The translations under genes and the position numbers were made by a program. DNA of 64,000 nt, taken from NCBI GenBank assembly GCA_002269645.1, contig NIVC01001709.1, positions 124,001 to 188,000 on the forward strand, given 5' to 3'. Below, in pieces: positions 7,725 to 30,113 of this stretch (the first letter of the stretch is position 1; the number at the start of each line of letters is the position of its first letter). The DNA is from Macrostomum lignano. Taxonomy: Eukaryota. The notes beneath the pieces were generated by a model. The model saw only the letters and a list, made by a program, of their open reading frames with translations, had not been told where the DNA came from and made no database searches.

Positions 7725-9970
7725 GCTGTCACAGAGGAGGAGGTGATCAAGCGCCGGCTATTGGTGGAAGGCGACTCCGGCCGCGAGGACAAGAAGCTGC
7801 AGTACGCTACGCGGCAGCTGGCAGCCTGGCTGGAGGCCGCCCCCGCCCCGGCCAAAGACGGCCAGACCCTGCAGCAGCTGCTGGTTCACGTGGCCCAACT
7901 GGAGGCTGCGATGGGCCGCGCGGCCAGAGCAGAGGAAGTGAACAGGACCGAGCAGCAGCACTATCGGGCTCTGGGCGACCAGGTTGCCGAGGAGATTCAG
8001 GCTGCGGAAGCACGGATTGTGCAGTTGCAGGTGTGCTTGGGTCTCGTCTGAAAGATATTTATTCGTGTCTTTCCTTTATTTTTACCACTATCGGAAGACT
8101 GCCCTTAAACACCCCCAATTGACCCTGTATTTAAACACCCTCAATAGACCCTGTCCCTAAACACCCTAAATATACCCTGTCCTTAAACACCATCCACAGA
8201 CCCTGTCCTTAAACACCATCCATAGACCCTGTCCTTAAACACCATCCACAGACCCTGTCCTTAAACACCATCCATAGACCCTGTCCTTAAACACCCTCAA
8301 TAGACCCTGTCCTTAAACACCCTAAATATACTCTGTCCTTAAACACCCTAAATATACCCTGTCCTTAAACACCCTCAATAGACCCTGTCCTTAAACACCA
8401 TCCACATACCCTGTCCTTAAACACCATCCACAGACCCTGTTTTTAAACACCATCCACAGACCCTGTCCTTAAACACCCTAAATATACTCTGTCCTTAAAC
8501 ACCCTAAATATACCCTGTCCTTAAACACCCTCAATAGACCCTGTCATTAAACACCATCCACAGACCCTGTCCTTAAACACCCTAAATATACTCTGTCCTT
8601 AAACACCCTCAATAGACCCTGTCCTTAAACACCCTAAATATACCCTGTCCTTAAACACCCTCAATAGACCCTGTCCTTAAACACCATCCATAGACCCTGT
8701 CATTAAACACCATCCATAGACCCTGTCCTTAAACACCATCCATAGACCCTGTCATTAAACACCATCCATAGACCCTGTCATTAAACACCATCCACAGACC
8801 CTGTCCTTAAACACCCTAAATATACCCTGTCCTTAAACACCCTCAATAGACCCTGTCCTTAAACACCCTAAATATACCCTGTCCTTAAACACCATCCATA
8901 TACCCTGTCCTTAAACACCATCCATAGACCCTGTCATTAACACCATCCACAGACCCTGTCATTAAACACCACCCATAGACCCTGTCATTAAACACCATCC
9001 ACAGACCCTGTCCTTAAACACCACCCATAGACCCTGTCATTAAACACCATCCACAGACCCTGTCCTTAAACACTACCCATAGACCCTGTCATTAAACACC
9101 ATCCACAGACCCTGTCATTAAACACCACCCATAGACCCTGTCATTAAACACCATCCACAGACCCTGTCATTAAACACCACCCATAGACCCTGTCATTAAA
9201 CAACACCCATAGACCCTGTCATTAAACAACACCCATAGACCCTGTCATTAAACACCATCCACAGACCCTGTCATTAAACACCATCCACAGACCCTGTCCT
9301 TAAACACCACCCATAGACCCTGTCATTAAACACCATCCACAGACCCTGTCATTAAACACCATCCACAGACCCTGTCATTAAACACCACCCATAGACCCTG
9401 TCATTAAACACCATCCATAGACCCTGTCATTAAACACCATCCACAGACCCTGTCCTTAAACACCATCCTCAGACCCTGTCCTCAATCTCACTGAGTAGTA
9501 ATTAGCTGACGAGGCTTCACACATTTGAATCTGTGAATAGCTACTCACGCCGTTTACCTCGCACTAAAATTTGCACCTCTCAGTCGGAGCTCGAGACGGC
9601 CATGCAGTGCCGCCGCAACCGTCAGGAATACGACACCCAGGCCGGCGTGATTCTCGGCCACCCCGACCGCGCCTCAAGTGAAGCTCGCCTAGCCGAAATG
9701 GGCGCCAGACTAGCCAGTTTGCGCCAGACTGACCGGCGCCTCGGCGCCAGGCTGGAAGCGCGCCGGCGCCAGTGCCGCCTGTTGGCAGCTGCTCTGCGCG
9801 ATTTCTCGTCAGCCGCCGCGTTTGAAGAAGACGAAGGCGGCGAATCCGGCGACGCGACCGATTTGGAAGTCGAGCCGCCGGACGCGTCAGTCGAACCCGA
9901 GGAGGCTGCAGCGAATGATGAAGATAAAGATGTTGTGATGCTGACTAAGCCTTCGGCGTCTAGCAGCTAG
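7725..9970 (+). CDS. THOC7: THO complex subunit 7, join(7725..8030,9584..9970), start codon unresolved
   Basis: AVTEEEVIKRRLLVEGDSGREDKKL and RRNRQEYDTQAGVILGHPDR match THOC7 motifs (AVTDDEVIRKRLLIDGDG, RKNRQEYDALAKVIQHHPDR). Phase-0 GT-AG intron 8031-9583. Confidence 0.9.
8100..9480. repeat. Minisatellite, 26 bp unit (CCCTGTCCTTAAACACCATCCACAGA), in THOC7 intron
   Basis: Tandem copies visible. Confidence 0.95.
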
Positions 9971-10614: not shown

Positions 10615-11432
10615 TCCCCGTCCTTCTGCTTGAGTAGTCCTTGATCAAAAGATTAACATTAGGTCTGCCTTCCTTCTGCTTGAGTAGTCCTTGTTCAAAA
10701 GATTAACATTGGGTCTTCCTTCTGCTTGAGTAGTCCTTGATCAAAAGATTAACATTAAGTCTGCCTTCCTTCTTAGGTCTTCCTTCTGCTTGAGTAGTCC
10801 TTGGTCAAAAGATTAACATTAAGTCTGCCTTCCTTCTTAGGTCTTCCTTCTGCTTGAGTAGTCCTTGGTCAAAAGATTAACATTAGGTCTTCCTTCTGCT
10901 TGAGTAGTCCTTGGTCAAAAGATTAACATTAGGTCTTCCTTCTGCTTGAGTAGTCCTTGATCAAAAGATTAACATTAGGTCTGCCTTCCTTCTGCTTGAG
11001 TAGTCCTTGGTCAAAAGATTAATATTGGGTCTTCCTTCTGCTTGAGTAGTCCTTGATCAAAAGATTAACATTGGGTCTTCCTTCTGCTTGAGTAGTCCTT
11101 GATCAAAAGATTAACATTGGGTCTTCCTTCTGCTTGAGTAGTCCTTGATCAAAAGATTAACATTAGGTCTTCCTTCTGCTTGAGTAGTCCTTGATCGAAA
11201 GATTAACATCAGGTCTGCCTTCTTTCTTAGGTTTTCCTTCTGCTTGAGTAGTCCTTGATCGAAAGATTAACATCAGGTCTGCCTTCTTTCTTAGGTTTTC
11301 CTTCTGCTTGAGTAGTCCTTGATCGAAAGATTAACATTAGGTCTGCCTTCTGCTTGAGTAGTCCTTGGTCAAAAGATTAACATCAGGTCTGCCTTCCTTC
11401 TTAGGTCTTCCTTCTGCTTGAGTAGTCCTTGG
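10615..11432. repeat. Minisatellite, ~46-62 bp unit (TCCTTCTGCTTGAGTAGTCCTTGATCAAAAGATTAACATTGGGTCT)
   Basis: Tandem copies with small length variants and no unique spacers. Confidence 0.95.
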
Positions 11433-11571
11433 TCCGCGTGCGTGCGGCCTGGCCTCGATTTACGTCAGCGCCGCCGCCCCCTTACAAAAAATTATCCAGA
11501 AATGTCCCACTACTCTACTGCAAGTAGGCTAGAAACGATTTTGACAAGCTAAACTTATTGCAAAATTGCAG

Positions 11572-14500
11572 GCCGCAAGCTTGCACAGCCAGCAGGCTGC
11601 CTCGAGCGGTGGCGCTGCTGCAGCCGCCGCCTCAGCTGCCGGTTCAACATCTGGCGGCTGCGGCTCCGCGTCGCGACTCCGCGTTGTTTGTGTTGTCGAC
11701 CAGACCGCGCCTCTGGGAACCGCCGCCCCGGCGTCGCCGTCATTGACGTCAACGGCTCCCCGTCAGAAGGCGTTCGCCGATGTTGAGCGAGCCTGCAAGC
11801 GGTGAGACAACTGAAAAAATTGTCTTGGACTATAGGCTTAGTGTGTGCGAGTCTTGACAGAGGAGGGCGTACTCTAGCCCACAAAGCCTCTCTGTCCGGC
11901 TCTCGGGTTCTTTGAAACTCCACAATAGCTACTCGGCCCGCTCAGGGTCTTTTCTCAGCTCTCCCCTCCTCTCCTCTCCTCTCCTCTCTTTCTCCTCTTT
12001 TCTCCTAGCATTTATCTCTCATCTATTCTCCATTCTCGCCTCTCCTCTCCTTTCTTTTTTCATCTCTCTCCTCTATTTCTTCTCCCTTCCTCTCTAATCT
12101 GGCCCGCAGACGCGAGCTGGATTCTTTATCTGGCCCTGGGGTAAAAAAAGTTTGCCGACCTCTGATCTAAGAGAATTCTGAGATCTGTAAACTTAATTTT
12201 GTTTAAACTTTTAATTCGACAGCTGCTGACAGCTAAATTCTGCAGTCATGGATAAAAAAGCACTGCTAAAATAAACGATGGAACCGCATAATTTAATAGT
12301 TCTATGCTTATTTTATGCTATACTTAGTCAATGGTAATAATTATCGCAGCCATTTCAATTAGAGCCTATTTTAATTTGCCCAGCTGGTCAAATTTCAAGC
12401 CAAATTTGTCGAATTGAAAGTTTCAAAAGTTGAATTGTGCATTTTAAACTGTATAGAATAATATTTAGCACTAAGAAAGCATTTCTATTTATGAAGTAAA
12501 CAAGGCATAGACAAAAGCAGTAGGTGAAATCTGTTAAAATGTAGCTCGATTTTTATTTCTGTAATAAAAGGCCTGATTTCGCTTTTAAAACGCATTTTTG
12601 TCTGAAAATTGTTTGTAGCAAAAATAAAACCTTAGCACCAATTTAGTGCCAATTTAGTGTCCTAGACAAGAGTTTAGCTCCAATTTAGTGTCCTAGACAA
12701 GAGTTTAGCTCCAATTTAGTGTCCTAGACAAGAGTTTAGCTCCAATTTAGTGTCCTAGACAAGAGTTTAGCACCAATTTAGTGTCCTAGACAAGAGTTTA
12801 GCACCAATTTAGTGTCCTAGACAATAGTTTAGCACCAATTTAGTGTCCTAGACAAGAGTTTAGCTCCAATTTAGTGTCCTAGACAAGAGTTTAGCTCCAA
12901 TTTAGTGTCCTAGACAAGAGTTTAGCTCCAATTTAGTGTCCTAGACAAGAGTTTAGCACCAATTTAGTGTCCTAGACAAGAGTTTAGCACCAATTTAGTG
13001 TCCTAGACAAGAGTTTCGCTCCAATTTAGTGTCCTAGACAAGAGTTTGGCTCCAATTTAGTGTCCTAGACAAGAGTTTAGCACCAATTTAGTGTCCTAGA
13101 CAAGAGTTTAGCTCCAATTTAGTGTCCTAGACAAGAGTTTAGCACCAATATAGTGTCCTAGACAAGAGTTTAGCACCAATTTAGTGTCCTAGACAAGAGT
13201 TTAGCACCAATATAGTGTCCTAGACAAGAGTTTAGCACCAATTTAGTGTCCTAGACAAGAGTTTAGCACCAATTTAGTGTCCTAGACAAGAGTTTAGCTC
13301 CAATTTAGTGTCCTAGACAAGAGTTTAGCTCCAATTTAGTGTCCTAGACAAGAGTTTAGCTCCAATTTAGTGTCCTAGACAAGAGTTTAGCTCCAATTTA
13401 GTGTCCTAGACAAGAGTTTAGCTCCAATTTAGTGTCCTAGACAAGAGTTTAGCACCAATATAGTGTCCTAGACAAGAGTTTAGCACCAATTTAGTGTCCT
13501 AGACAAGAGTTTAGCACCAATTTAGTGTCCTAGACAAGAGTTTAGCACCAATTTAGTGTCCTAGACAAGAGTTTCGCTCCAATTTAGTGTCCTAGACAAG
13601 AGTTTGGCTCCAATTTAGTGTCCTAGACAAGAGTTTGGCTCCAATTTAGTGTCCTAGACAAGAGTTTAGCACCAATTTAGTGTCCTAGACAAGAGTTTAG
13701 CACCAATTTAGTGTCCTAGACAAGAGTTTGGCTCCAATTTAGCATCCTACTTTAGAGTTTTGCGGCGCAAGCAGGCCTTCAAATGAATTCCCAGAAATTT
13801 CAACTTTTTTTCCTACATAGATAAGGTTTCAGGCCAGCGCTTTGAGGTCTGATATTATAGTTAAGTTAACATTTGGCTGCAATGAACTGTAAATAAATAA
13901 AAACTACTCTTTAAAGCCAAGGATTGCACTGGACTCATGACACTACTGTTGTACAGTCGTATTCAGTAGTCACAGCTGGTTTTTGTGTTCTAAATTATAG
14001 ACATCTGTTGTTGTTTTTTTCAGTCGCCATTTACGCATTGTTTTGTTTGTTTTCGCTTGTCCAACGCAAATTTGAGTCCTAATATGAGTAAATGCTAGTT
14101 TAACAGCTGGGTTGTTTATCGTTGGTTTTGTCAGTACATGCCGATTACGTAATAATTGTCGTTTATTTAACTACGGCTTAGCAAATTTGCTCAGTCCTAA
14201 CATCCGATTGTACTAAGCGCAATCATATGGCTTATAGTTGTTACATTGCGCATCTAACCGTTGCACAGGAGCAAAAACATATGCAAATTATTAATCATTA
14301 TCCGCTTTGTTTCCAGTGTTGGCTTAACCTGCATCAGCTTTGGCCACATCATCAACGATGTGGACACTGCAGCTGAGCTGTTCTACAGTGCTCACGCCGT
14401 TATCGTCATGCTCACCGACTTGGTAATGCAGCTTTAGGGACAGGCTTTGGTGTCTGCTGTGGTGTGCGACCCTGCGATCATGGGAACTTGGGAGCTTTGA

Positions 14501-17500
14501 CCTTCACTTGTCCTTGCGGGACCTCTGCTAACGTGTTAGTCTTACATTTCGATGATGAGATTCTAATTGGGTCTAGATGATGAGATTCTAATTGGGTCTA
14601 GATGATGATATTCTAATTGGGTCTAGATGATGAGATTCTAATTGGGTCTAGATGATGAGATTCTTATTGGGTCTAGATGATGATATTCTAATTGGGTCTA
14701 GATGATGATATTCTAATTGGGTCTAGATGATGAGATTCTAATTGGGTCTAGATGATGAGATTCTAATTGGGTCTAGATGATGAGATTCTAATTGGGTCTA
14801 GATGATGAGATTCTTATTGGGTCTAGATGATGAGATTCTTATTGGGTCTAGATGATGAGATTCTATTGGGTCTAGATGATGAGATTCTAATTGGGTCTAG
14901 ATGATGAGATTCTTATTGGGTCTAGATGATGAGATTCTTATTGGGTCTAGATGATGAGATTCTTATTGGGTCTAGATGATGAGATTCTTATTGGGTCTAG
15001 ATGATGAGAGTCTATTGGGTCTAGATGATGAGATTCTAATTGGGTCTAGATGATGAGATTCTAATTGGGTCTAGATGATGAGATTCTAATTGGGTCTAGA
15101 TGATGGGATTGTAATTGGGTCTAGATGATGAGATTCTAATTGGGTCTAGATGATGAGATTCTAATTGGGTCTAGATAATGAGATTCTTATTGGGTCTAGA
15201 TGATGAGATTCTAATTGGGTCTAGATGATGAGATTCTAATTGGGTCTAGATGATGAGATTCTAATTGGGTCTAGATGATGAGATTCTAATTGGGTCTAGA
15301 TGATGAGATTCTAATTGGGTCTAGATGATGAGATTCTAATTGGGTCTAGATGATGAGATTCTAATTGGGTCTAGATGATGAGATTCTAATTGGGTCTAGA
15401 TGATGGGATTCTAATTGGGCCTAGATGATGAGATTCTAATTGGGTCTAGATAATGAGATTCTTATTGGGTCTAGATGATGAGATTCTAATTGGGCCTAGA
15501 TGATGAGATTCTAATTGGGTCTAGATGATGAGATTCTAATTGGGTCTAGATGATGGGATTCTAATTGGGCCTAGATGATGAGATTCTAATTGGGTCTAGA
15601 TAATGAGATTCTTATTGGGTCTAGATAATGAGATTCTAATTGGGCCTAGATGATGAGATTCTAATTGGGTCTAGATGATGAGATTCTAATTGGGTCTAGA
15701 TGATGAGATTCTTATTGGGTCTAGATAATGAGCAAGGCTGATCGCACTGCTGCATGTCTTGAAGTCTAATACAAAATGTGTTTATTATTAAAGTTTCTTG
15801 TGAGAATAGAGGTTTATCTGTTTGTTTCCAGCTTTTTTGTTGTTTTAATTTTTTATTGAAGGCGCAGCGCAAATGATAAATAGAATTTTTTGTTATTGCG
15901 TTTCAACCGTTATGACCAGACGGGTACTTTTAGTTTTTTATGGGTTTGTGTAAAATAAATATTAAGTATTAGTCCAGTTAAAGTACTCGCTTGTCTCACA
16001 CTAACTCTTCCAAGTCTTGGCAGTTTGTGTCAGTTTTATTCCTTACTAATCTGGTTACTGGTTAGCTATTACTCGCTATGATCTGCGAGTGAGCTGGCGT
16101 TTTTGATAGCTTTATGAAATCCTAACTCACCTCTAATCCACTCTAACCCACCTCTAATAGTCCCTAATCCACTGCTAGAATAGTCCCTAATCCACTGCAA
16201 GAATAGTCCCTAATCCACTGCAAGAATAGTCCCTAATCCACTGCAAGAATAGTCCTTAATCCACTGCTAGAATAGTCCCTAATCCACTGCTAGAATAGTC
16301 CCTAATCCACTGCTAGAATAGTCCCTAATCCACTGCTAGAATAGTCCCTAATCCACTGCTAGAATAGTCCCTAATCCACTGCAAGAATAGTCCCTAATCC
16401 ACTGCTAGAATAGTCCCTAATCCACTGCTAGAATAGTCCCTAATCCACTGCAAGAATAGTCCCTAATCCACTGCTAGAATAGTCCCTAATCCACTGCAAG
16501 AATAGTCCTTAATCCACTGCAAGAATAGTCCCTAATCCACTGCTAGAATGGTCCCTAATCCACTGCAAGAATAGTCCTTAATCCACTGCAAGAATAGTCC
16601 CTAATCCACTGCTAGAATGGTCCCTAATCCACTGCTAGAATGGTCCCTAATCCACTGCTAGAATGGTCCCTAATCCACTGCTAGAATGGTCCTTAATCCA
16701 CTGCTAGAATAGTCCCTAATCCACTGCTAGAATAGTCCCTAATCCACTGCTAGAATAGTCCCTAATCCACTGCTAGAATAGTCCCTAATCCACTGCAAGA
16801 ATAGTCCCTAATCCACTACTAAAATAGTCCCTAATCCACTGCTAGAATAGTCCCTAATCCACTGCAAGAATAGTTCCTAATCCACTGCAAGAATAGTCCC
16901 TAATCCACTGCAAGAATAGTCCCTAATCCACTGCAAGAATAGTCCCTAATCCACTGCAAGAATAGTCCCTAATCCACTGCAAGAATAGTCCCTAATCCAC
17001 TGCAAGAATAGTCCCTAATCCACTGCAAGAATAGTCCCTAATCCACTGCAAGAATGGTCCCTAATCCACTGCAAGAATAGTCCTTAATCCACTGCAAGAA
17101 TAGTCCCTAATCCACTGCTAGAACAGTCCCTAATCCACTGCTAGAATGGTCCTTAATCCACTGCTAGAATAGTCCCTAATCCACTGCAAGAATAGTCCTT
17201 AATCCACTGCAAGAATAGTCCCTAATCCACTGCTAGAATGGTCCCTAATCCACTGCAAGAATAGTCCTTAATCCACTGCAAGAATAGTCCTTAATCCACT
17301 GCTAGAATGGTCCCTAATCCACTGCTAGAATGGTCCCTAATCCACTGCTAGAATGGTCCCTAATCCACTGCAAGAATAGTCCTTAATCCACTGCAAGAAT
17401 AGTCCCTAATCCACTGCTAGAATAGTCCCTAATCCACTGCTAGAATAGTCCCTAATCCACTGCTAGAATAGTCCCTAATCCACTGCTAGAATAGTCCTTA

Positions 17501-20500
17501 ATCCACTGCAAGAATAGTCCCTAATCCACTGCTAGAATAGTCCCTAATCCACTGCTAGAATAGTCCCTAATCCACTGCTAGAATGGTCCCTAATCCACTG
17601 CTAGAATAGTCCCTAATCCACTGCTAGAATGGTCCCTAATCCACTGCTAGAATAGTCCCTAATCCACTGCAAGAATAGTCCCTAATCCACTGCAAGAATA
17701 GTCCTTAATCCACTGCAAGAATAGTCCCTAATCCACTGCTAGAATAGTCCCTAATCCACTGCAAGAATAGTCCCTAATCCACTGCTAGAATAGTCCCTAA
17801 TCCACTGCTAGAATAGTCCCTAATCCACTGCTAGAATAGGCCCTAATCCACTGCAAGAATAGTCCTTAATCCACTGCAAGAATAGTCCCTAATCCACTGC
17901 AAGAATAGTCCTTAATCCACTGCAAGAATAGTCCCTAATCCACTGCAAGAATAGTCCTTAATCCACTGCAAGAATAGTCCCTAATCCACTGCAAGAATAG
18001 TCCTTAATCCACTGCAAGAATAGTCCCTAATCCACTGCAAGAATAGTCCTTAATCCACTGCAAGAATAGTCCCTAATCCACTGCTAGAATGGTCCCTAAT
18101 CCACTGCAAGAATAGTCCCTAATCCACTGCAAGAATAGTCCTTAATCCACTGCAAGAATAGTCCCTAATCCATTGCTAGAATAGTCCCTAATCCACTGCA
18201 AGAATAGTCCCTAATCCACTGCTAGAATAGTCCCTAATCCACTGCTAGAATGGTCCCTAATCCACTGCAAGAATAGTCCCTAATCCACTGCAAGAATAGT
18301 CCTTAATCCACTGCAAGAATAGTCCTTAATCCACTGCTAGAATACGCTCGTAGTTACATATCTACACACATTAGAACAATATGTGTGTAGGTGCCTGCAG
18401 TTATTTTATTTGTTTGTTGTGAATCAATGATTTTCTGTTTGGTGTTGGTGGCCCCCCAGCAGCAGTTTTATGAGGCTGGTACAAGTTCTGTACTAGTGCA
18501 ATCCTGGCGTCAGTAAATTATATATGTTTATTAATTATGCAATCCATATTTTTGCACAGCTCTATTTATCAGAATTTCAATACGATCTCGCTCAAAATTG
18601 ACACTTCATTAGCAGCCAAATTTTGCGGAAACCCGGAATCATAAAAAAATTATTAATTCATATTTTCTTTGCACGGCTAATTCCATTGGTATCTGTTGCT
18701 ACTGACTAGTTCTCAGGCTTGCAACTTGCTCTATGCCTTGGCTTTTACCAATTGCTATTGTACTTATCAGTAGTGAGGCCTAGATTATCTCTGCTAGCAA
18801 TTTAATTGGAATTTTGATTTTTTATTTATTGCACTAAATTTGCTAACAACAATACAGGTTAGATGTTGAGCTGCATAAGGTCCAGTTCACCCACCTGGAC
18901 TATGGCACCACTACCGCTCTGCACGAGTTTTACAATTCAGAGGTGGCCATAACGGAAATGTCCGCCAAGGTTTGTCTTACTGGCGACAGCTGTGAGCAGT
19001 CCGCGCGCTGTTCCCCCTTTTTTATCTGCTCTTGAGACAACCTGTGAACTGGTTCGTTCGTCTTTTGCTTTCTGGGCCAACTGGCACACGCGGATGGCCC
19101 GTTGAAAACGCTACCCGTGACAAGGATCGTTTTAAAAGAGTCATTGCAAACAACTCACTGGTGACTCAAGCGAGTTTTAGAACCGTTAAAAAAGTCACAC
19201 GAAAAAAATCCTCTAAGAGTCGTTGTGTTGGCGCTTAACTTTCTACTAACTCAAGTAGACTAAATAGAGTCGTGATAAATGTGAAATTGTACCGCGAAGT
19301 CTTGTCGTTTTTGAGTCGTCTAGAGTCTGGGGCGACGCAAGTGACTCTTGGGACGTTTCTTGGCCTTTGGTACCGTTTTCATCGGGCACAACAGGATAAG
19401 GTTGAGGCCTCGGGTTGCTGTCTCCATGCTTTGTGCTGTGTGTGTGGTGTGTGTTTTTTGTGTTGCGGAAGCAGCAGGGCCTGGAGATGAAGATGAACGA
19501 GAGGGATTGCCGCTATATAACAGCGAGTGTAGCGCCATGCAAATTCATGCAAATCTCAGACCGAGGACTTGCCTTACCAACCCCCACCCCATCGCCATCG
19601 CCATTCTCCACTTCCTCCTTCGCTCCGTTCCTGAGCAATGCGAGGCTGTGTGTGCGCCTACCAGCCCAGATGATGAGGGGTTTGGCGTCTGACACTCTCA
19701 GTTGGCTTAGCAGCGATAATATAGACAGCGGGCCTATAGCGCATTCTTATCCCTGCCGAGTTATGGGAGTCTGGGCCGCATCGCCCGTCCTAATGGGCGA
19801 AATTGGCTGCATCGTTGCTTTTTCCCATTTCTCTCTCTCTCTTGCTTCCCCCTGTCCTGCTCAAAGCTCCCCCCCCCCAAGGCCAATATTAGTTTTAGTA
19901 AATATATGCTGTTACTTACACAGCCTGCCTACGAATACTTCTATTCAATGGCAACTATACACTGACAGTTCTGACTGATGCACTTGTCATTCGCTAATTT
20001 TTTTCATTCTAAATTATCTGATAATTTTTTTACTTTTAGAAGAAATCCGCTGCTTTTGTCCTGTTTTTCTTGTCATCTTTTTTTAGGCCTCAGTTAAACC
20101 TGTTGCTGCTTGAGCTGGCTTTATTTGTTTTTCCTGTTTAATTGTTCCTAATTTTTATCAACGCGTCCGCAGGTCCAGCAGTACTCAATCCTGTATCACC
20201 TGGGCGTTAGGGAGAGTCTGGGCATGCGGGACAACATTATTCTGGTGCACGACCTGAATAAGGATGAGACCGACTCGCTGCGGGTGAGTGCGGCTTTTGG
20301 CCTGAGGATTTGGGAGGCTGGCCCAGCAACTGAGGATCTGGGAGGCTGGCCCAGCAACTGGGGATCCGGGAGGCTGGCCCAGCAACTGAGGATCTGGGAG
20401 GCTGGCCCAGCAACTGAGGATCTGGGAGGCTGGCCCAGCAACTGAGGATCTGGGAAGCTGGCCCAGCAACTGAGGATCCGGGAGGCTGGCTCAGCAACTG

Positions 20501-23500
20501 AGGATCCGGGAGGCTGGCCCAGCAACTGAGGATCTGGGAGGCTGGCCCAGCGACTGAGGATCCGGGAGGCTGGCCCAGCAACTGAGAATTTGGGAGGCTG
20601 GCCCAGCAACTGAGGATCCGGGAGGCTGGCCCAGCAACTGAGGGTCTGAGAGGCTGGCCCAGCAACTGAGGATCCGGGAGGCTGGCCCAGCAACTGAGGA
20701 TCTGGGAGGCTGGCCCAGCAACTGAGGATCCGGGAGGCTGGCTCAGCAACTGAGGATCCGGGAGGCTGGCTCAGCAACTGAGGATCCGGGAGGCTGGCCC
20801 AGCAACTGAGGGTCTGTGAGCAGTCTTCTAAAAGCAGCAACCCAGCAGTCAGCCGCATCCGCAGCCGCTGCCCCTACCCCGCAGAACTCGCTGTCCGCCT
20901 CCTACCGGCTGTTCCCCTACCTGGTGGACGACAGCACGGGCCGATGCGTGGTGCCGGACTCGGCCTGCCACAAGCTGCTGCTGACCAACTGCCACACCGG
21001 CCACGACCACGGCACAGACTCGCTGCTGCTCACCAAGCTCAAGCGAGCACTTCGGGAAGTTGAGTCCACCTCGAAGGCGCAGCTGAAGGAGAAATTTCTA
21101 GACGATCTTCAGAAGGCCCGACTGGAGTACAAGGGCGACTGCTTGAAAGAGTTCCTGCGCAGAATGCGATCCAGACTGGACGATCCGGACCTTATCTCGC
21201 CGGACATCATACTCAACATGCTGCTCAGCTACCGCAAGGCCCAGGACTACTCGGCCATGGTTGGCCTAGTTGAGGAGCTCAAGACTCTGCCGCACGCTAA
21301 GCACCTTGTCGACATCGTCAGCATCCAGAACCTGTACGCCTTCGCGCTCAATCGGCGGAACCGGCCAGGCGATCGCAAGGAAGCTCTCGAGGTGATCCTG
21401 CGGGCTGTACAGCGCTGCGACAAGCCGGTGCCGGATATGCTCAGCCTTGTTGGCCGCATCTATAAGGACATGTTCACCGACTCCGACTACACCGACACTG
21501 AGAGCCTGGCGCACGCCACTGAATGGTACCGCAAGGGATTCGAAGTGAGCATCCTTGAATTGAATTAAGTTTTGCTCGAATTAAGATTTGAAGTCCTCTC
21601 ATTTTCTCGCTTCCCTTTTCCCTCCTTTCTTCCCCTTTCCCCTCCTTTCTTCCCCTATCCCCTCCTTTCTTCCCCTTTCCCCTCCTTTCTTCCCCTATCC
21701 CCTCCTTTCTTCCCCTTCCCCTCCTTTCTTCCCTCTTTCCCCTCCTTTCTTCCTCTATCCCCTCCTTTCTTTTCCTATCCCCTCCTTTCTTCCCCTTTCC
21801 CCTCCTTTCTTCCCTCTTTCCCCTCCTTTCTTCCCCTATCCCCTCCTTTCTTCCCCCTTCCCCTCCTTTCTTCCCCTATCCCCTCCTTTCTTCCCCTTTC
21901 CCCTCCTTTCTTCCCCTATCCCCTCCTTTCTTCCCCTTTCCCCTCCTTTCTTCCCCTTTCCCCTCTTTTCTTCCCCTTTCCCCTCCTTTCTTCCCCTTCC
22001 CCTCCTTTCTTCCCCTTTCCCCTCCTTTCTTCCCCTTTCCCCTCCTTTCTTCCCCTTTCCCCTCCTTTCTTCCCTCTTTCCCCTCCTTTCTTCCCCTTTC
22101 CCCTCCTTTCTTCCCCTTTCCCCTCCTTTCTTCCCTCTTTCCCCTCCTTTCTTCCCCTTTCCCCTCCTTCCTTCCCCTTGCTCATCCTTTCTTCCTTTTT
22201 CTTATTCCCTCCTCTGTTATATGCCTTTCTCTCACCGACTGAGCTAGTTGCTAGCTACATGGATTAACCACAATCGCCGCTCTCTCCGCAAACAGGTGCA
22301 ACCGAACGAATACTCGGGCATAAACCTGGCCACCCTGCTAGTAGTCTCGGGCCAGGAGCTGAGCTCGAACTCGGAGCTCCAACGCGTGGCTCTGGTGCTC
22401 AACAACCTGATTGGCAAGAAGGGCTCCCTCCGCGACCTCAAAGACTACTGGGACGTGGCCACGTTCTTCGAGATCAGCGTGCTGGCTGAGAACTATAACA
22501 AAGCCTGCGTCGCGGCGGAGTGCATGTTCAAGCTGGACCCGCCCGCCTGGCACATCAAGTCCACCATCAACAACATCCAGCTCATCAATCGGTTCCGGCA
22601 GAAGAAGGAGATCGAGCGCAGGGAGCCGCAGCCGGCCGTAACGGAGGACCGGCACAAGGAGGCGTTTCACTTCTGGGTGGACTTTTTCAACGCGGCAACC
22701 ACCAGCCAGCCGGGCGGGCCGGCCGCCGGCGGCAAAGACGCTGCCGGGGCGTCGGTGTCGGCCGAAGGCGGAGGCGACAGCAGCCCTCCAGCGGGCCCGG
22801 CCCTCTACCACGTGCTGGTGCAGGAGTCCGACCAGGTGTTCAAACCGAGCTACCTGCAGCTAAACCTTGACGCTGAGCCCCGCTCGCTGGCCCTGTGGTA
22901 TATCACCGGCACTGCCGGCAGTGGCGTCGGCGGGCACGCCGAAGATTCCAAAACCGGCGTCGGCGGCGGCGGCGGCGGCGTCGCCAGCTCGGGCAGCGGC
23001 GATTGGTTCTTTCCCGAGCACCAGATTCGTCGAATTAGTCTGGCTAAGAAAGATCCCCGCGGAGTCTACCTGTTTGTGCTGTCCGCCGCGGACGACTTCC
23101 ACCTGCTGTTCCCCTCGGAGCACATGCGGAAATTGTTCTACAACTCAGCCACCATCACACTGCTGTCTGTGGCGCAGGGAGACGAAGATCTCGAGGAGGC
23201 CTTTGATCAGGTGGGTTTGCGGCGTGTCTGTAATTTGGGGATGTGTCACTGCAATCTGTGATGTGTCACTGAGTGCAATCTGTGATGTGTCACTGTGTGC
23301 AATCTGTGATGTGTCACTGAGTGCAATCTGTGATGTGTCACTGTGTGCAATCTGTGATGTGTCACTGTGTGCAATCTGTGATGTGTCACTGTGTGCAATC
23401 TGTGATGTGTCACTGTGTGCAATCTGTGATGTGTCACTGTGTGCAATCTGTGATGTGTCACTGTGTGCAATCTGTGATGTGTCACTGTGTGCAATCTGTG

Positions 23501-26500
23501 ATGTGTCACTGTGCAATCTATGATGTGTCACTGTGTGCAATCTGTGATGTGTCACTGTGTGCAATCTGTGATGTGTCACTGTGTGCAATCTGTGATGTGT
23601 CACTGTGCAATCTATGATGTGTCACTGTGTGCAATCTGTGATGTGTTACTGTGTGCAATCTGTGATGTGTCACTGTGTGCAATATGTGATGTGTCACTGT
23701 GTGCAATCTGTGATGTGTCACTGTGTGCAATCTGTGATGTGTCACTGTGTGCAATCTGTGATGTGTCACTGTGTGCAATCTGTGATGTGTCACTGTGTGC
23801 AATCTGTGATGTGTCACTGTGTGCAATATGTGATGTGTCACTGTGTGCAATCTGTGATGTGTCACTGTGTGCAATCTGTGATATGTCACTGTGTGCAATC
23901 TGTGATGTGTCACTGCAATCTGTGATGTGTCACTGTGTGCAATCTGTGATGTGTCACTGCAATCTGTGATGTGTCACTGTGTGCAATCTGTGATGTGTCA
24001 CTGCAATCTGTGATGTGTCACTGTGTGCAATCTGTGATGTGTCACTGTGTGCAATCTGTGATGTGTCACTGTGTGCAATCTGTGATGTGTCACTGTGTGC
24101 AATCTGTGATGTGTCACTGTGTGCAATCTGTGATGTGTCACTGTGGGCAATCTGGGATGTGTCACTGTAGGCAATCTGTGATGTGTCACTGTGTGCAATC
24201 TGTGATGTGTCACTCAATCTGGGATGTGTCACTGTGTGCAATCTGTGATGTGTCACTGCAATCTGTGATGTGTCACTGTGTGCAATCTGTGATGTGTCAC
24301 TGCAATCTGTGATGTGTCACTGCAATCTGTGATGTGTCACTACAATCTGTGATGTGTCACTGCAATCTGTGATGTGTCACTGTGTGCAATCTGTGATGTG
24401 TCACTGTGTGCAATCTGTGATATGTCACTGTGTGCAATCTGTGATATGTCACTGCAATCTGTGATGTGTCACTGCAATCTGTGATGTGTCACTGTGTGCA
24501 ATCTGTGATGTGTCACTGCAATCTGTGATGTGTCACTGTGTGCAATCTGTGATGTGTCACTGTGTGCAATCTGTGATGTGTCACTGTGTGCAATCTGTGA
24601 TGTGTCACTGTGTGCAATCTGTGATGTGTCACTGTGTGCAATCTGTGATGTGTCACTGTGTGCAATCTGTGATGTGTCACTGTGTGCAATCTGTGATGTG
24701 TCACTGTGTGCAATCTGTGATGTGTCACTGTGTGCAATCTGTGATGCGTCACTGTGTGCAATCTGTGATGTGTCACTGTGTGCAATCTGTGATGTGTCAC
24801 TGTGTGCAATATGTGATGTGTCACTGTGTGCAATCTGTGATGTGTCACTGTGTACAATCTGTGATGTGTCACTGTGTGCAATCTGTGATGTGTCACTGTG
24901 TGCAATCTGTGATGTGTCACTGTGTGCAATCTGTGATGTGTCACTGTGTGCAATCTGTGATGCGTCCCTAAAATATGAAAATGTGCTTTTTGTATTCTAG
25001 GAACATCCGCATAGCAACATCTGACACCTGACTAACGCTCGGTCTCCCCCCCCCAGGTCGTAGAATTCGACTACGAACTGGACGACCGAGGCGGCGGCGG
25101 TCGCAAGCTGCTGGGCCGGGGCACCTTCGGCACGGTGTACGCTGGCATTGAGAAGCGGCGCCAGATGAAGATCGCAATTAAGGAGATCAATGAGGATCAG
25201 GTGAAAGAGGTTCAGGCGCTGCACGAAGAGATTCGCCTGCACTCCCGGCTGAACCATCGGAATATTGTGCGCTACCTGGGGTCCATGTCCGAGGCCGGGA
25301 TTATCAAGATCTTCATGGAGCAGGTGCGACCGGTTTGCTGCATAAGTGTATCTGGGGCTAATTGTCTAATAGCCTCAAACATTGGGGCTAATTGTCTAAT
25401 AGCCTCAAACATTGGGGCTACTTGTCTAATAGCCTCAAACATTGGGGCTAATTGTCTAATAGCCTCAAACATTGGAGATAATAGCCTCTAGACATTGCAG
25501 CTAATAGCCTCTAGACATTGCAGCTAATAGCCTCTAGACATTGCAGCTAATAGCCTCTAGACATTGCAGCTAATAGCCTCTAGACATTGCAGCTAATAGC
25601 CTCTAGACATTGGAGCTAATGGCCTCTAGATACTGCAGCTAATAGCCTCTAGACATTGGAGCTAATGGCCTCTAGATACTGCAGCTAATAGCCTCTAGAC
25701 ATTGGAGCTAATGGCCTCTAGATACTGCAGCTAATAGCCTCTAGACATTGGAGCTAATGGCCTCTAGATACTGCAGCTAATAGCCTCTAGACATTGGAGC
25801 TAATGGCCTCTAGATACTGCAGCTAATAGCCTCTAGACATTGGAGCTAATGGCCTATAGATACTGCAGCTAATAGCCTCTAGACATTGGAGCTAATGGCC
25901 TCTAGATACTGCAGCTAATAGCCTCTAGATGCTATAACTTTACCCCGCCACATGCCCGCAGGTGCCCGGCGGCTCTCTGAGCTCCCTGCTCAAGAAGAAC
26001 GGCCCCCTGTCGGAGCAGATCACTGCCTATTATTCCTACCAGATTCTGGAAGGCCTGCAGTATCTGCACGACAATAAAATTGTCCACCGCGACATCAAAG
26101 GCGACAACATTCTGGTGAACACGTACAGCGGCGTGTTGAAGATCTCGGACTTCGGCACCAGCCGCCGCCTGGTTGGCATGGCCCCGGCCGCCACCTTCAC
26201 CGGCACAATCCAGTACATGAGCCCTGAAGTCATCGACCTCGGCATCAAAGGCTACGGCCTGCCGGCTGACGTCTGGTCCTTCGGCTGCACAGTGATCGAG
26301 ATGCTGACTGGCCAGCCGCCCTTCATTGAGCTGGGCTCCGTGCAGGCCACCATGTTCAAAGTGGGGTTCTATAAGGTGAGCATTTGGGATAACTCAGGGC
26401 AAAAGTTCACATTCCTCAGGTCAAAGCTTCAGCTACCTCAGGTCACAGCTTCAGCTACCTCAGGTCACAGTTTCAGCTACCTCAGGTCACAGTTTCAGTT

Positions 26501-29218
26501 ACCTCAGGTCACAGTTTCAGCTACCTCAGGTCACAGCTTCAGCTACCTCAGGTCACAGCTTCAGCTACCTCAGGTCACAGTTTCAGCTACCTCAGGTCAC
26601 AGTTTCAGCTACCTCAGGTCACAGTTTCAGCTACCTCAGGTCACAGTTTCAGCTACCTCAGGTCACAGTTTCAGCTACCTCAGGTCAAAGCTTCAGATAG
26701 TAATCATTATTCCCCATTCGCGCAGGTGCACCCGGACATCCCGGAGGCCAGCAGCAAGACCTGCTCAGACTTCTGCCTGCAGTCCTTCGCCATCGACCCC
26801 AACCAGCGGGCCACCTGCGCCCAGCTTTTGGCCCACGATTTCCTGGCCGAGGCCGCCCGCCTGCTGCACCGGAAGCGGGGCACCAACCGAGGCATCAGCC
26901 GCACCGACCAGGCCGGCAGCGGCGGCGGCGGCGGAGGCAGCGGAGGCAGGCGGCACCCGCACCACCTGGCCTCCATCGATGTCGCTGCCGCCCACGCAGC
27001 GAATGTCGCGTCGGCCTCAGCAACGGTGACCCCGACTTCCGCCTGCGCTCACAACGCCGCTGTGGCCGCCGCCGCCGTAGCTGGCAGCGCATCGACGGCG
27101 AACACGCCGAGCCCGCCGTCGTCCAGCGCCGCCGACCATCTGCTCAGCCCGTTCATCAGCGACGTTCCCAGCAGCATCGGCAGCGGCAGCAGCAACACCA
27201 GCAACAAGTTCTTCTTGCTCCGCAAAGACTCCGAGCGTCGGGAGACTCTGCACGGCATCATGCTGCAGGATGGGGCCGAGATTGTGCAGCGGTGGATCCA
27301 GCTTCTCGGCTATCAGCACTGCGACTGCGGCGCCGCCTCTTCCTCCGCCGCCACCGCCACTGCCGACGAAGCTGGCGCCGCTGCTGCTGCAGCCGCAGCC
27401 TCAGCCGCCGCCTCCGCCTCCGCGACCATCAACGTGCCCGACTCTGACCTGCTCGCCCAGGTGCTGCGCGCGTTCGCCGCCTACATCAAAGAGCGCCAGG
27501 CTCGATTCGCCGAACTGGAGGACGCCATACGCCGCCTGGTGGCCGCCTCGGGCTACCGGACCGCCAGCCTGGCCGTCTACTCGCTCGGCGAGGCCGTCAC
27601 CGCCACCCTGCGCCGCCGGCACATCCAGCCGCACTGGGTGTTCGCCCTGGACAGCATCCTCAGGGATGCCATCGAAGCGGCCGCCCGCTGCCTGCCAGCC
27701 TCCAATCCGGCCGCCGCTGCCGATGCTGCCGCCGGCGATGGCGCAGCAGCTGCTGACAACGGCGCCGAGGACGAGGACGCGCTGACGTCCGGTGTGTCGA
27801 CTTACGACAGCCGCGACGCCGGCGGCACAGCGGGGGCCAGACCGCAGCAGCAGCCGCAGCTGCAGCGTCGGCAGTCGCAACAGCAGCAGCAGTCGCCTCC
27901 GGCGCCTTCCATGGCGATCTCCGCCGCTGTCAACTCCGAAGCCTCGTCAGAACACCTCGACAGGCTTCGCCGACGCTACAGTGAAGCGACGTCCGAGTAC
28001 GCCCGCCTGCTGGAGCGGGCCTGCGCCGGCCGGCTGGCCGAGTGCCAGCAGCTCCGCCTTAGGCTGCAATCGTCGTCGGCCGAGTCAGAAACTGCGGCGG
28101 CCGCCGCTGCCGCCGACGCCTCGGACGCGGACACGGTGAGGATCGACCCGGACATGGCGGCCTGGGCGGAGCGCGAGGCCCGAGTGTCCAGCGTCGATGT
28201 CGCCGTGCTGGCCCTGCAGGATTTCGATTTGGAGACGCTGCTGCTGTGCGACAAAGAGGATCTGAGCCGGGCGCCGATCCGGTGAGCGCGGGACCGGGCT
28301 GGGATCATTCAGATCTGTCTCCCCGATCCCTACAGCCTTCCAGTGCCAATCAACATGAGGTGGCTCAATGGTTAACTCAAATCTCAACCTCAGATCCATC
28401 AGTTTCGGACTTCGTAGATCCCTTAATCTTATTCTACTAGGTCTCACCCTAGATCCCTAAATCCCTACATCTCACACTAGATCCCTAAGTCCCTAAATCT
28501 CACCCTAGATCCCTAAATCCCTAAATCTCACCCTATATCAAATCCCTAAATCTCACCCTAGATCCCTAAATCTCATTCTATATCAAATCCCTAAATCTCA
28601 CTCTAGATCCCTAAATCTCATTCCATATCAAATCCCTAAATCTCATTCTATATCAAATCCCTAAATCTCACTCTAGATCCCTAAATCTCACCCTAGATCC
28701 CTAAAATATCGCCATAAATTTCCAATCTCAACCTCAGATCCATCAGTTCGGACTTCGTAGATCCCTTAATCTTATTCTACTAGATCTCACCCTAGATCCC
28801 TAAATCTCACCCTAGATCCCTAAATCTCACCATAAATCACCGAATCTCGCCCTAGTAGATCCCTAAATCTTACCCTAGGTACCTAAATCTCAGCCTTCCT
28901 AAATTCTTAAGTCCCACTTTTCTAAATCACTGAAACTCGCCTTCTAGATCTCTAACTTCCACTTCTAAGCCCCTAAATCTCATTCTCTAATCCAGATTTC
29001 TAACTCTAGAGAAGCCCTTTAGGCAAATTCCCTAGATTCTATACTTAGATTTTTATTCCACTATTCTGCAGCAAATTATATAGGTCCCTGTTTTATTCCT
29101 ATCACGCAGAGGCGGCGCAGTTGTCAGACTCTGGCAGGCGATTCTCAGGCACCGAGCCAGCCAGCAGCAATCTTCATGTGAAGCACCTGGCAACTCAGGT
29201 ACCGAAGCCCAGCACTAA
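11572..29218 (+). CDS. MAP3K5: ASK-family MAP kinase kinase kinase (MAP3K5/MAP3K15-like). Exons: 11572-11801, [14317-14422 or 18858-18969], 20173-20283, ~20846-21544, 22296-23210, 25057-25323, 25962-26375, 26726-28281, 29110-29218
   Basis: ASK hallmarks: [68 protein letters not shown]; kinase motifs [29 protein letters not shown]; [14 protein letters not shown]; C-terminal SAM-like [16 protein letters not shown] phases are consistent. The start codon and the acceptor near 20846 are uncertain. Confidence 0.92.
12640..13742. repeat. Minisatellite, 31 bp unit (AGTGTCCTAGACAAGAGTTTAGCTCCAATTT)
   Basis: About 35 tandem copies in a MAP3K intron. Confidence 0.95.
14317..14422 (+). CDS. Candidate alternative (mutually exclusive) MAP3K exon 2a: (R)[35 protein letters not shown]
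   Basis: Acceptor CTTTGTTTCCAG|T and donor TTG|GTAATG. Same phases (2 in, 0 out) as exon 18858-18969, with ungapped peptide homology to it. Confidence 0.72.
14560..15732. repeat. Minisatellite, 25 bp unit (CTAATTGGGTCTAGATGATGAGATT)
   Basis: Tandem copies in a MAP3K intron. Confidence 0.95.
16150..18345. repeat. Minisatellite, 23 bp unit (GAATAGTCCCTAATCCACTGCTA), ~2.2 kb
   Basis: Tandem copies in a MAP3K intron. Confidence 0.95.
18858..18969 (+). CDS. MAP3K exon 2b (canonical): (R)[37 protein letters not shown]
   Basis: Matches the ASK consensus F.KLDFGET..L..FYNADVA...MS. Branch TGCTAAC, acceptor ATACAG|G, donor AAG|GTTTGT. Confidence 0.88.
20300..20815 (+). repeat. Minisatellite, 28 bp unit (GGAGGCTGGCCCAGCAACTGAGGATCTG)
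   Basis: Fills a MAP3K intron; the same family occurs inverted at 29575-30113. Confidence 0.95.
21595..22190. repeat. Polypyrimidine minisatellite, 20 bp unit (TTCCCCTTTCCCCTCCTTTC)
   Basis: Tandem copies in a MAP3K intron. Confidence 0.93.
23235..24965. repeat. Minisatellite, 24 bp unit (TGTGATGTGTCACTGTGTGCAATC)
   Basis: About 70 copies in a MAP3K intron; source of many spurious ORFs. Confidence 0.97.
25350..25930. repeat. Compound minisatellite: 30 bp unit, then 23 bp unit (GCTAATAGCCTCTAGACATTGCA) with 46-bp dimer structure
   Basis: Visible in the intron that splits the kinase domain. Confidence 0.93.
26410..26700. repeat. Minisatellite, 22 bp unit (TCAGCTACCTCAGGTCACAGCT)
   Basis: Fills MAP3K intron 26376-26725. 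Confidence 0.93.
28380..28880. repeat. Degenerate 20 bp repeat (CTAGATCCCTAAATCTCACC) with a ~60-bp segment duplicated at ~28380-28440 and ~28724-28783
   Basis: Visible in the last MAP3K intron. Confidence 0.85.
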
Positions 29219-29574: not shown

Positions 29575-30113
29575 CTTCATCAGTTGCTGGGCTGGCCTCC
29601 CAGATCCTCAGTTGCTGGGCCAGCTTCTCAGATCCTCAGTTGTGGGCCACCGCCAGACTCCCAGATCCTCAGTTGCTAGGCCAGCCTCCCAGATCCTCAG
29701 TTGCTGGGCCAGCCTCCAAGATCCTCAGTTGCTGGGCCAGCCTCTCAGATCCTCAGTTGCTGGGCCAGCCTCCCAAATCCTCAGCTGCTGGGCCAGCCTC
29801 TCAGATCCTCAGTTGCTGGGCCAGCCTCTCAGATCCTCAGTTGTGGGCCACCGCCAGACTCCCAGATCCTCAGTTGTGGGCCACCGCCAGACTCCCAGAT
29901 CCTCAGTTGCTGGGCCAGCCTCTCAGATCCTCAGTTGCTGGGCCAGCCTCTCAGATTCTCAGTTGTATGCCACCGCCAGACTCCCAGATCCTCAGTTGCT
30001 GGGCCAGCTTCTCAGATCCTCAGTTGCTGGGCCAGCCTCTTAGATCCTCAGTTGCTGGGCCAGCCTCTCAGATCCTCAGTTGTGGGCCACCGCCAGACTC
30101 CCAGATCCTCAGA
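29575..30113 (-). repeat. Inverted copy of the 28-bp minisatellite at 20300-20815
   Basis: CAGATCCTCAGTTGCTGGGCCAGCCTCC is the reverse complement of the intronic unit. Confidence 0.93.

Follow-up and report, generated by a model that had tools for sequence, protein, structure and literature searches.

The subject of this work is a gene of the ASK-family MAP3K type on the + strand of a 64,000-nt stretch (hereafter the window) of contig NIVC01001709.1, from assembly Mlig_3_7 (GCA_002269645.1) of Macrostomum lignano. Between exons 1 and 3 the gene contains two versions of exon 2, designated 2a and 2b, of which 2b is the canonical form, present in the known transcript, and 2a the alternative. On balance, 2a probably serves as a working coding exon in place of 2b, and mutually exclusive use of the two is predicted from their frames. 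For exon 2a, duplication, phase compatibility, a coding signature and recent sequence constraint are established, and the evidence for each is set out below, together with the points that weigh against a functional role.

The assignment of the gene to the ASK family, made in a first reading of the stretch (hereafter the original prediction), was borne out by the joint presence of Pfam MAP3K_TRAF_bd, TPR-S, ASK_PH, Pkinase, HisK-N-like and DRHyd-ASK, which together form the complete domain set. MAP3K_TRAF_bd and TPR-S match the spliced model assembled here, DRHyd-ASK matches it only when exon 2b is included, and ASK_PH, Pkinase and HisK-N-like are listed on the GenBank products of the gene; ASK1 (8qgy) is the best PDB match both by sequence and by fold. 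The exons (Table 1) were mapped by tblastn with a human ASK1 query that served as a lead only, and the resultant model with 2b agrees residue for residue with the GenBank protein PAA64856.1 (BOX15_Mlig001449g2, 1457 aa, 5'-partial).

The coordinates, splice sites and phases of 2a and 2b were re-derived from the sequence and agree with those given originally. Exon 2a is bordered by ttccag/TGTTGG...GACTTG/gtaatg and exon 2b by atacag/GTTAGA...GCCAAG/gtttgt. Each enters in phase 2, completing the codon begun by the last 2 bases of exon 1, and ends in phase 0 before exon 3, and the joins 1-2a-3 and 1-2b-3 are both open. The claim that inclusion of both exons, or of neither, breaks the frame was likewise upheld, since 2a followed by 2b meets a stop three codons into 2b, and skipping of both leads to a stop within exon 3. 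The corollary that only one of the two can be used was, however, too strict: a 90-nt form of 2b, termed 2b', which follows an internal AG at 18878-79, stays in frame behind 2a. As had also been described, the exons sit amid minisatellites, three arrays of which fill most of the interval (Table 1). The AG...GT borders, phases and open frames of 2a and 2b hold in all three genomic copies of the gene in the assembly, on NIVC01001709.1 (the window), NIVC01002262.1 and NIVC01000942.1. With respect to the criteria for mutually exclusive clusters of Pillmann et al. 2011 (PMC3228551), 2a and 2b are both internal, neighbouring exons that lie between exon 1 and exon 3 on the + strand, and their lengths of 106 and 112 nt are 6 nt, or two whole codons, apart. 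The donors of 2a (gtaatg) and 2b (gtttgt) are weaker than the gtg[agc]g donors found elsewhere in the gene; weaker donors on both alternative exons would be typical of regulated exons, though this is no test in itself.

The ungapped identity of 9/35 between the 2a and 2b peptides was reproduced, and shuffle z-scores together with a ranking of candidates bear out the proposal that the two are homologous tandem duplicates in the same phase. Intron 1 contains just four open AG..GT candidates of fitting phase and size, and of these 2a alone scores positively against the ASK profile; when both strands of the whole window are considered, it ranks second of 1648 frame-compatible candidates, with 2b first. 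The shuffle z-score of 2a is 4.35 against a profile of non-Macrostomum sequences, 3.7 against 2b and 6.1 when the reference is exon 2 of BOX15_Mlig014523g2, the M. lignano paralogue, with between 0 and 3 of 5000 register-locked shuffles equalling the score of 2a. With the register unlocked, a local hidden Markov model (HMM) of the exon-2 segments of other animals gave the open reading frame (ORF) of 2a 7.9 bits, placing it fourth among 1723 six-frame fragments; the local score is thus weak, and the similarity stands out from chance once the splice sites are allowed to set the register. Exon 2a starts with VGLTC, as compared with LGLTC in exon 2 of the paralogue and VGATLE at the corresponding place in human ASK1. 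The paralogue exon, for its part, is 112 nt long with the phases of 2b, and beyond the GLTC start that it has in common with 2a the remainder is 2b-like; unlike the ASK gene described here, the paralogue has a single exon 2, set between short introns (~600 and ~420 nt). Taken together, the z-scores, the ranking, the GLTC start and the length and phases of the paralogue exon indicate that 2a is a genuine duplicate of exon 2. At the nucleotide level 2a and 2b are 38% identical, and at third codon positions 29%, which amounts to saturation; the duplication that produced them is, to judge from their sequence, very old. The BLOSUM62 score of 2a against the paralogue exon 2 is 20% of self.

The coding signature of 2a is evident in its codon usage, which gives a log-likelihood of +8.0 in frame and of -24 and -41 out of frame, as compared with +8.3 for 2b. 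The GC content at its third codon positions is 0.71, versus a GC content of 0.37 in the flanking intron. The top 15 coding-potential windows of the 7-kb intron all fall on 2a and in its frame, and within this intron its codon bias reaches the 99.96th percentile. Since third positions are saturated, a neutral copy would by now approach random sequence, and in random sequence composed like the local intron, 35 open codons together with the AG and the GT would be met with a probability of ~4e-4. Among the three genomic copies, 2a varies at 1 of its 106 sites, the change (CAC>CAT) being synonymous; the corresponding counts are 0/232 for exon 1, 0/111 for exon 3 and 3/112 for 2b, where two are amino-acid changes, and 130/2640 (4.9%) for unique intron sequence. 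The Poisson probability of one change or fewer in 2a is 0.03-0.04, and the likelihood ratio for an exon rate over an intron rate is 12. The splice sites and polypyrimidine tract of 2a are identical in the three copies, though nearby minisatellites have changed length. The view that 2a resembles living coding sequence is supported by these features.

The expected effect of the swap on the protein was examined next. The exon-2 segment had been placed in the N-terminal thioredoxin-binding domain, and sequence alignment agrees, in that exon 2 corresponds to residues ~123-159 of human ASK1 (we counted the human residues ourselves, taking Cys225 and Cys250, which PMC10972558 names, as anchors). The thioredoxin-binding domain of human ASK1 comprises residues 88-267, and residues 128-143 are one of three segments that TRX1 binding protects in hydrogen-deuterium exchange mass spectrometry (PMC10972558); the exon-2 segment overlaps these protected residues. 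The domain is modelled in part by Pfam DRHyd-ASK, to which isoform a, the product of the 1-2a-3 join, gives no match. The exon-2 stretch is extremely conserved among animals (FEKLDFGE..VLD.FYNADVA.VD.S), and 2b fits the family motif with VQFTHLDYG. As originally described, 2a is without LD(F/Y)G, the near-invariant LDxG having become IIND, and two conserved acidic residues, at both of which 2b has E, are replaced by His and Met; these losses fall in the stretch that thioredoxin shields in human ASK1. The cysteine that 2a was said to add is indeed absent from 2b, but it is not new, the same GLTC being present in the paralogue. Human ASK1, 2b and the paralogue share 15 hydrophobic columns, and 2a is hydrophobic at 14 of them. 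AlphaFold2 returned the same strand-helix-strand arrangement in isoforms a and b, with mean predicted local distance difference test (pLDDT) values of 87.9 and 89.9, respectively, and ten-residue block values of 86-95 over the 2a segment and 93-97 over the 2b segment, confidences that are biased because the homologue alignment imposes the fold. The isoform-a model finds its best PDB match in ASK1 8qgy, with weaker matches to flavodoxin-like, TIR and DNPH1 folds. Models of this kind suggest compatibility of 2a with the fold and would not constitute proof of it. A retained core with a replaced polar site has the look of a functionally altered variant, although it can also be read as partial decay.

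Public gene models bear on the use of the two exons. The GenBank annotation was built from RNA, by a pipeline of StringTie plus de novo transcriptome, TACO, TBONE and TransDecoder (PMC5730564), and the 1-2b-3 isoform is therefore transcript-supported. The original prediction regarded 2a as hidden, which holds insofar as its ORF, at 58 aa, falls under the 60-aa default, but not insofar as 2a was already inside two public proteins. These, UniRef A0A1I8IXP1 and A0A1I8JIM8, presumably stem from the genome paper of Wasik et al. 2015, and they carry 2a exactly, fused in frame to 2b' (...MLTDL/VQFTHLDYG...). An annotation pipeline has thus placed 2a in coding sequence (CDS), which counts in favour of its being a functional exon. 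Elsewhere both models contain errors, with a wrong-frame stretch of exon 5 in one and skipped pieces of exon 4 in both, and they look mis-annotated. Beyond these two and PAA64856.1, the protein databases hold no M. lignano transcript-derived fragment of the ASK 5' region. The proteins of the other two copies, PAA59436.1 and PAA74527.1, take their start from a Met within exon 3, and the whole N-terminal part is missing; exons 1, 2a and 2b are intact upstream of these starts. Such starts were considered as a sign of transcripts containing both 2a and 2b, an interpretation that was rejected, as the ORF of such a transcript would begin with MSAK in 2b and not with MRDNIIL. Since both proteins start in exon 3, they are uninformative on exon 2.

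Searches for 2a-like sequence elsewhere returned little. When 1.84 billion representatives were scanned by HMMER with the 1-2a-3 peptide, A0A1I8JIM8 alone matched strongly, and a further 142 matches were far weaker and either 2b-type or spurious; a match in five stretches proved to be a bacterial LRR/BNR surface protein and was discarded as a false positive. A search with a 115-aa isoform-a peptide gave no match, though A0A1I8IXP1 shares 78 identical residues with it, a negative of little weight given how sparse the word index is with queries so short. In JGI metagenome contigs a degenerate pattern for 2a had 0 matches, and there are no additional copies of 2a in the three ASK loci. Among annotated ASK isoforms of molluscs, insects and crustaceans no within-species difference was seen at the exon-2 segment, and no description of such a switch in an ASK kinase was found in the literature searched; in having an alternative version of exon 2, the M. 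lignano gene is unlike the ASK family in the animal isoforms and papers sampled.

In the mechanism proposed, exon 2 of the M. lignano ASK gene was duplicated in tandem long ago, which would have given rise to 2a and 2b. The swap would replace a strand-helix-strand unit of the thioredoxin-binding (DRHyd-ASK) domain, the 2a version presumably keeping the hydrophobic core and dispensing with the LDxG loop and the two acidic residues. Exclusivity would be imposed by the reading frame: as 106 and 112 each leave a remainder of 1 on division by 3, taking in both exons or skipping both gives an early stop, and the transcripts concerned would be subject to nonsense-mediated decay. Steric exclusion is inapplicable, given the length of intron that separates 2a from 2b. 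A search for docking/selector pairing yielded only inverted repeats of 14-21 nt with 76-90% complementarity, none of them placed as a set, and RNAduplex applied to 300-nt intron flanks performed no better than shuffles (all absolute z-scores <= 1.1); the reading frame is the only exclusivity mechanism visible in the sequence. We infer that 2a is spliced in, that it excludes 2b and that the resultant isoform would be altered in its response to thioredoxin or another ligand of the domain, and the two isoforms might conceivably differ in redox or regulator sensitivity. It is possible, if rather doubtful, that a lineage-specific switch supplies, alongside a normal ASK, a form from the same gene that is unresponsive to thioredoxin or to a pocket ligand, perhaps under the regulation of stress or regeneration.

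Several observations weigh against a functional role for 2a. The sole RNA-derived model that spans the region, PAA64856.1, uses 2b from its first AG (18856-57), and no 1-2a-3 transcript is present among the GenBank and protein-database models of the gene. A 2a-like exon was found in no other species in the databases searched, nor was such an exon, or a relic of one, found in the introns of the paralogue. The global BLOSUM62 score between 2a and 2b (21/191) is 11% of self and is therefore below the 15% of self score that the WebScipio predictor applies by default (PMC3228551). The residues that 2a has lost are near-invariant in animals, a loss that relaxed selection fits too, and the bias in the AlphaFold2 confidences detracts from the structural argument. 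In addition, the evidence for constraint from the genomic copies is modest, consisting as it does of one change among three related copies with p ~0.04.

Some of these points would also be expected if 2a were an unproductive cassette, which in combination with 2b shifts the frame, triggers nonsense-mediated decay and tunes the level of ASK, or a coding exon only recently disused, with no 2a isoform that matters today. The stop three codons into full-length 2b, the donors of 2a and 2b that are weaker than those of other exons, the loss of near-invariant family residues and the lack of any 2a-only model in GenBank are all in keeping with this explanation, which is nevertheless fairly unlikely. 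The premature stop arises only when 2a is joined with the full 2b, and a coding signature is not required of poison cassettes; indeed, a frame-shifting cassette needs neither homology, nor a hydrophobic core, nor exon-like codon bias, and 2a has all three, while the one site at which its three copies differ is a synonymous one. It is quite improbable that 2a is a dead relic of the duplication, never spliced and intact by luck. In keeping with a relic, 2a is missing from the RNA-derived annotation, has lost the LDxG motif and the two acidic residues, and is lineage-specific as far as has been seen; but with synonymous sites saturated a relic should be near-random, the open frame with splice sites having a chance of ~4e-4, and neither the codon bias of 2a, which is at the 99.96th percentile for the intron, nor its variable-site rate among the three copies, which is exon-like and not intron-like, is what a relic would show.

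The two UniRef models raise the alternative that 2a is used together with 2b' (18880-18969), giving a protein with a tandem strand-helix-strand unit. Both hold exactly MLTDL/VQFTHLDYG in frame, and the best branch-point-like ctaac is just ~11 nt 5' of the normal 2b acceptor, such that a downstream AG is conceivable. However, this tandem form is very unlikely, because the UniRef models are faulty elsewhere (in exon 5 in one and exon 4 in both) and because the RNA-derived model takes the first AG, 18856-57; moreover, the internal site comes only as the fourth AG downstream, behind purine-rich sequence, and a doubled strand-helix-strand unit would be unlikely to fit the fold. Finally, that 2a owes its likeness, ORF and splice sites to chance is barely credible. 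The local HMM score of 7.9 bits, in fourth place among 1723 fragments, and the failure of Pfam DRHyd-ASK to match isoform a could be read in that way, but the register-locked z-scores of 3.7-6.1, which 0 to 3 of 5000 shuffles matched, the second place among 1648 candidates, the phases and intron that 2a has in common with 2b, and the GLTC start that it has in common with the paralogue all argue otherwise.

Table 1. Features of the ASK gene in the window. Positions are those of the window.
Feature	Position	Strand	Evidence or remarks
Exon 1	11572..11801	+	Donor CAAGCG/gtgaga; last 2 bases belong to a split codon; PAA64856.1 CDS begins here
Minisatellite, 31-nt units, 36 copies	12642..13749	.	Intron 5' of exon 2a
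Exon 2a, 106 nt, candidate alternative exon, encodes (R)+35 residues	14317..14422	+	Splice sites, phase, homology, codon bias
Minisatellite, 25-nt units, 47 copies	14551..15732	.	Between 2a and 2b
Minisatellite, 23-nt units, 95 copies	16156..18344	.	Between 2a and 2b
Exon 2b, 112 nt, canonical, encodes (R)+37 residues	18858..18969	+	PAA64856.1; Pfam DRHyd-ASK, 34 bits; tblastn with human ASK1
2b', 90-nt form of 2b after internal AG 18878-79	18880..18969	+	Junction MLTDL/VQFTHLDYG in A0A1I8IXP1 and A0A1I8JIM8
Exon 3, phase 0 in, phase 0 out	20173..20283	+	PAA64856.1, tblastn
Exon 4, end of N-terminal domain and start of TPR / MAP3K_TRAF_bd	20885..21544	+	PAA64856.1, Pfam
Exon 5, TPR and pleckstrin homology (PH) region	22296..23210	+	PAA64856.1, tblastn
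Exons 6 (25057-25323) and 7 (25962-26375), kinase domain, minisatellite intron between	25057..26375	+	PAA64856.1, tblastn
Exons 8 (26726-28281) and 9 (29110-29218, including stop codon), C-terminal region	26726..29218	+	PAA64856.1

The GenBank proteins of the copies on NIVC01002262.1 and NIVC01000942.1 are ~97% identical to the C-terminal region encoded in the window. The introns of the three copies differ by a few percent in substitutions and by indels, and 2a and 2b, 4.4 kb apart in the window, are ~2.1 kb apart in the other two. Nearly every intron of the gene (10621-26696) has its own minisatellite, with a distinct unit of 20-46 nt and arrays of 0.3-2.2 kb; the lengths of the arrays vary among the three copies, and the exon islands keep their position. 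A 28-nt unit, CTGAGGATCTGGGAGGCTGGCCCAGCAA, is present as 18 units in intron 3 (20302-20805) and, reverse-complemented, as 13 units at 29584-30079, ~360 nt beyond the stop codon. Exons 4-9 are thus flanked by two inverted arrays of ~500 nt, which could anneal in the pre-mRNA, provided that the transcript reaches so far. Exon 1 contains no ATG, and the CDS begins at 11572 just after an AG at 11570-71, the probable acceptor for a spliced leader. In M. lignano this leader has an ATG at its end (PMC8629364), and leader ATG and exon 1 together would read ATG GCC GCA AGC, in frame, so that the leader is probably the source of the start codon. A THOC7 gene lies ~1.6 kb 5' of the ASK gene on the same strand (window ~7725-9970). 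Long repetitive open frames with DTSQIAHS repeats, located on the minus strand at 38900-40800, were among the frame-compatible candidates and are probably a further tandem repeat and not a gene.

The duplicated exons IIIb and IIIc of FGFR2 are an example of exclusive exons enforced by frame and nonsense-mediated decay. As in frame-enforced clusters of this kind, 2a and 2b are neighbouring internal exons of the same splice type and phase, with lengths that are not divisible by three and differ by a multiple of three, and their peptides are homologous and cover the same structural element. They are unlike the usual clusters in being far more diverged, with 20-26% amino-acid identity and a score below the predictor default, in being separated by 4.4 kb of minisatellites, in that 2a is without the family's most conserved motif, and in that their usage is predicted. 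Clusters of predicted mutually exclusive exons have been catalogued by WebScipio/Kassiopeia (PMC3228551, PMC3923563). A choice between duplicated exons within one intron interval also recalls the Dscam type, from which the present pair differs in consisting of two exons only and in showing no complementary pairing above shuffles, its inverted repeats being short and weak. With regard to the family itself, the M. lignano gene has the full domain set, like human ASK1/MAP3K5, MAP3K6 and MAP3K15, and 2b aligns with the conserved F-x-x-LD(F/Y)G...FYN..(V/I)A core.

Should 2a prove to be unused, it would amount to a very well-preserved exon duplicate, accompanied by two mis-spliced public protein models. 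If its use as an alternative to 2b were confirmed, the type of event would be one that is known already, and what is plausibly new would be its occurrence in an ASK kinase, in one lineage; it would be the first such exon pair known to us in the ASK family, and one found in a regeneration model that is capable of transgenesis. The use of 2a would then represent a natural domain swap in the least understood region of ASK, in which the fold is kept and the most conserved loop replaced, and comparison of the two isoforms could reveal the role of that loop, be it in thioredoxin binding, in contact with the TPR region or in a deoxyribohydrolase-like ligand pocket.

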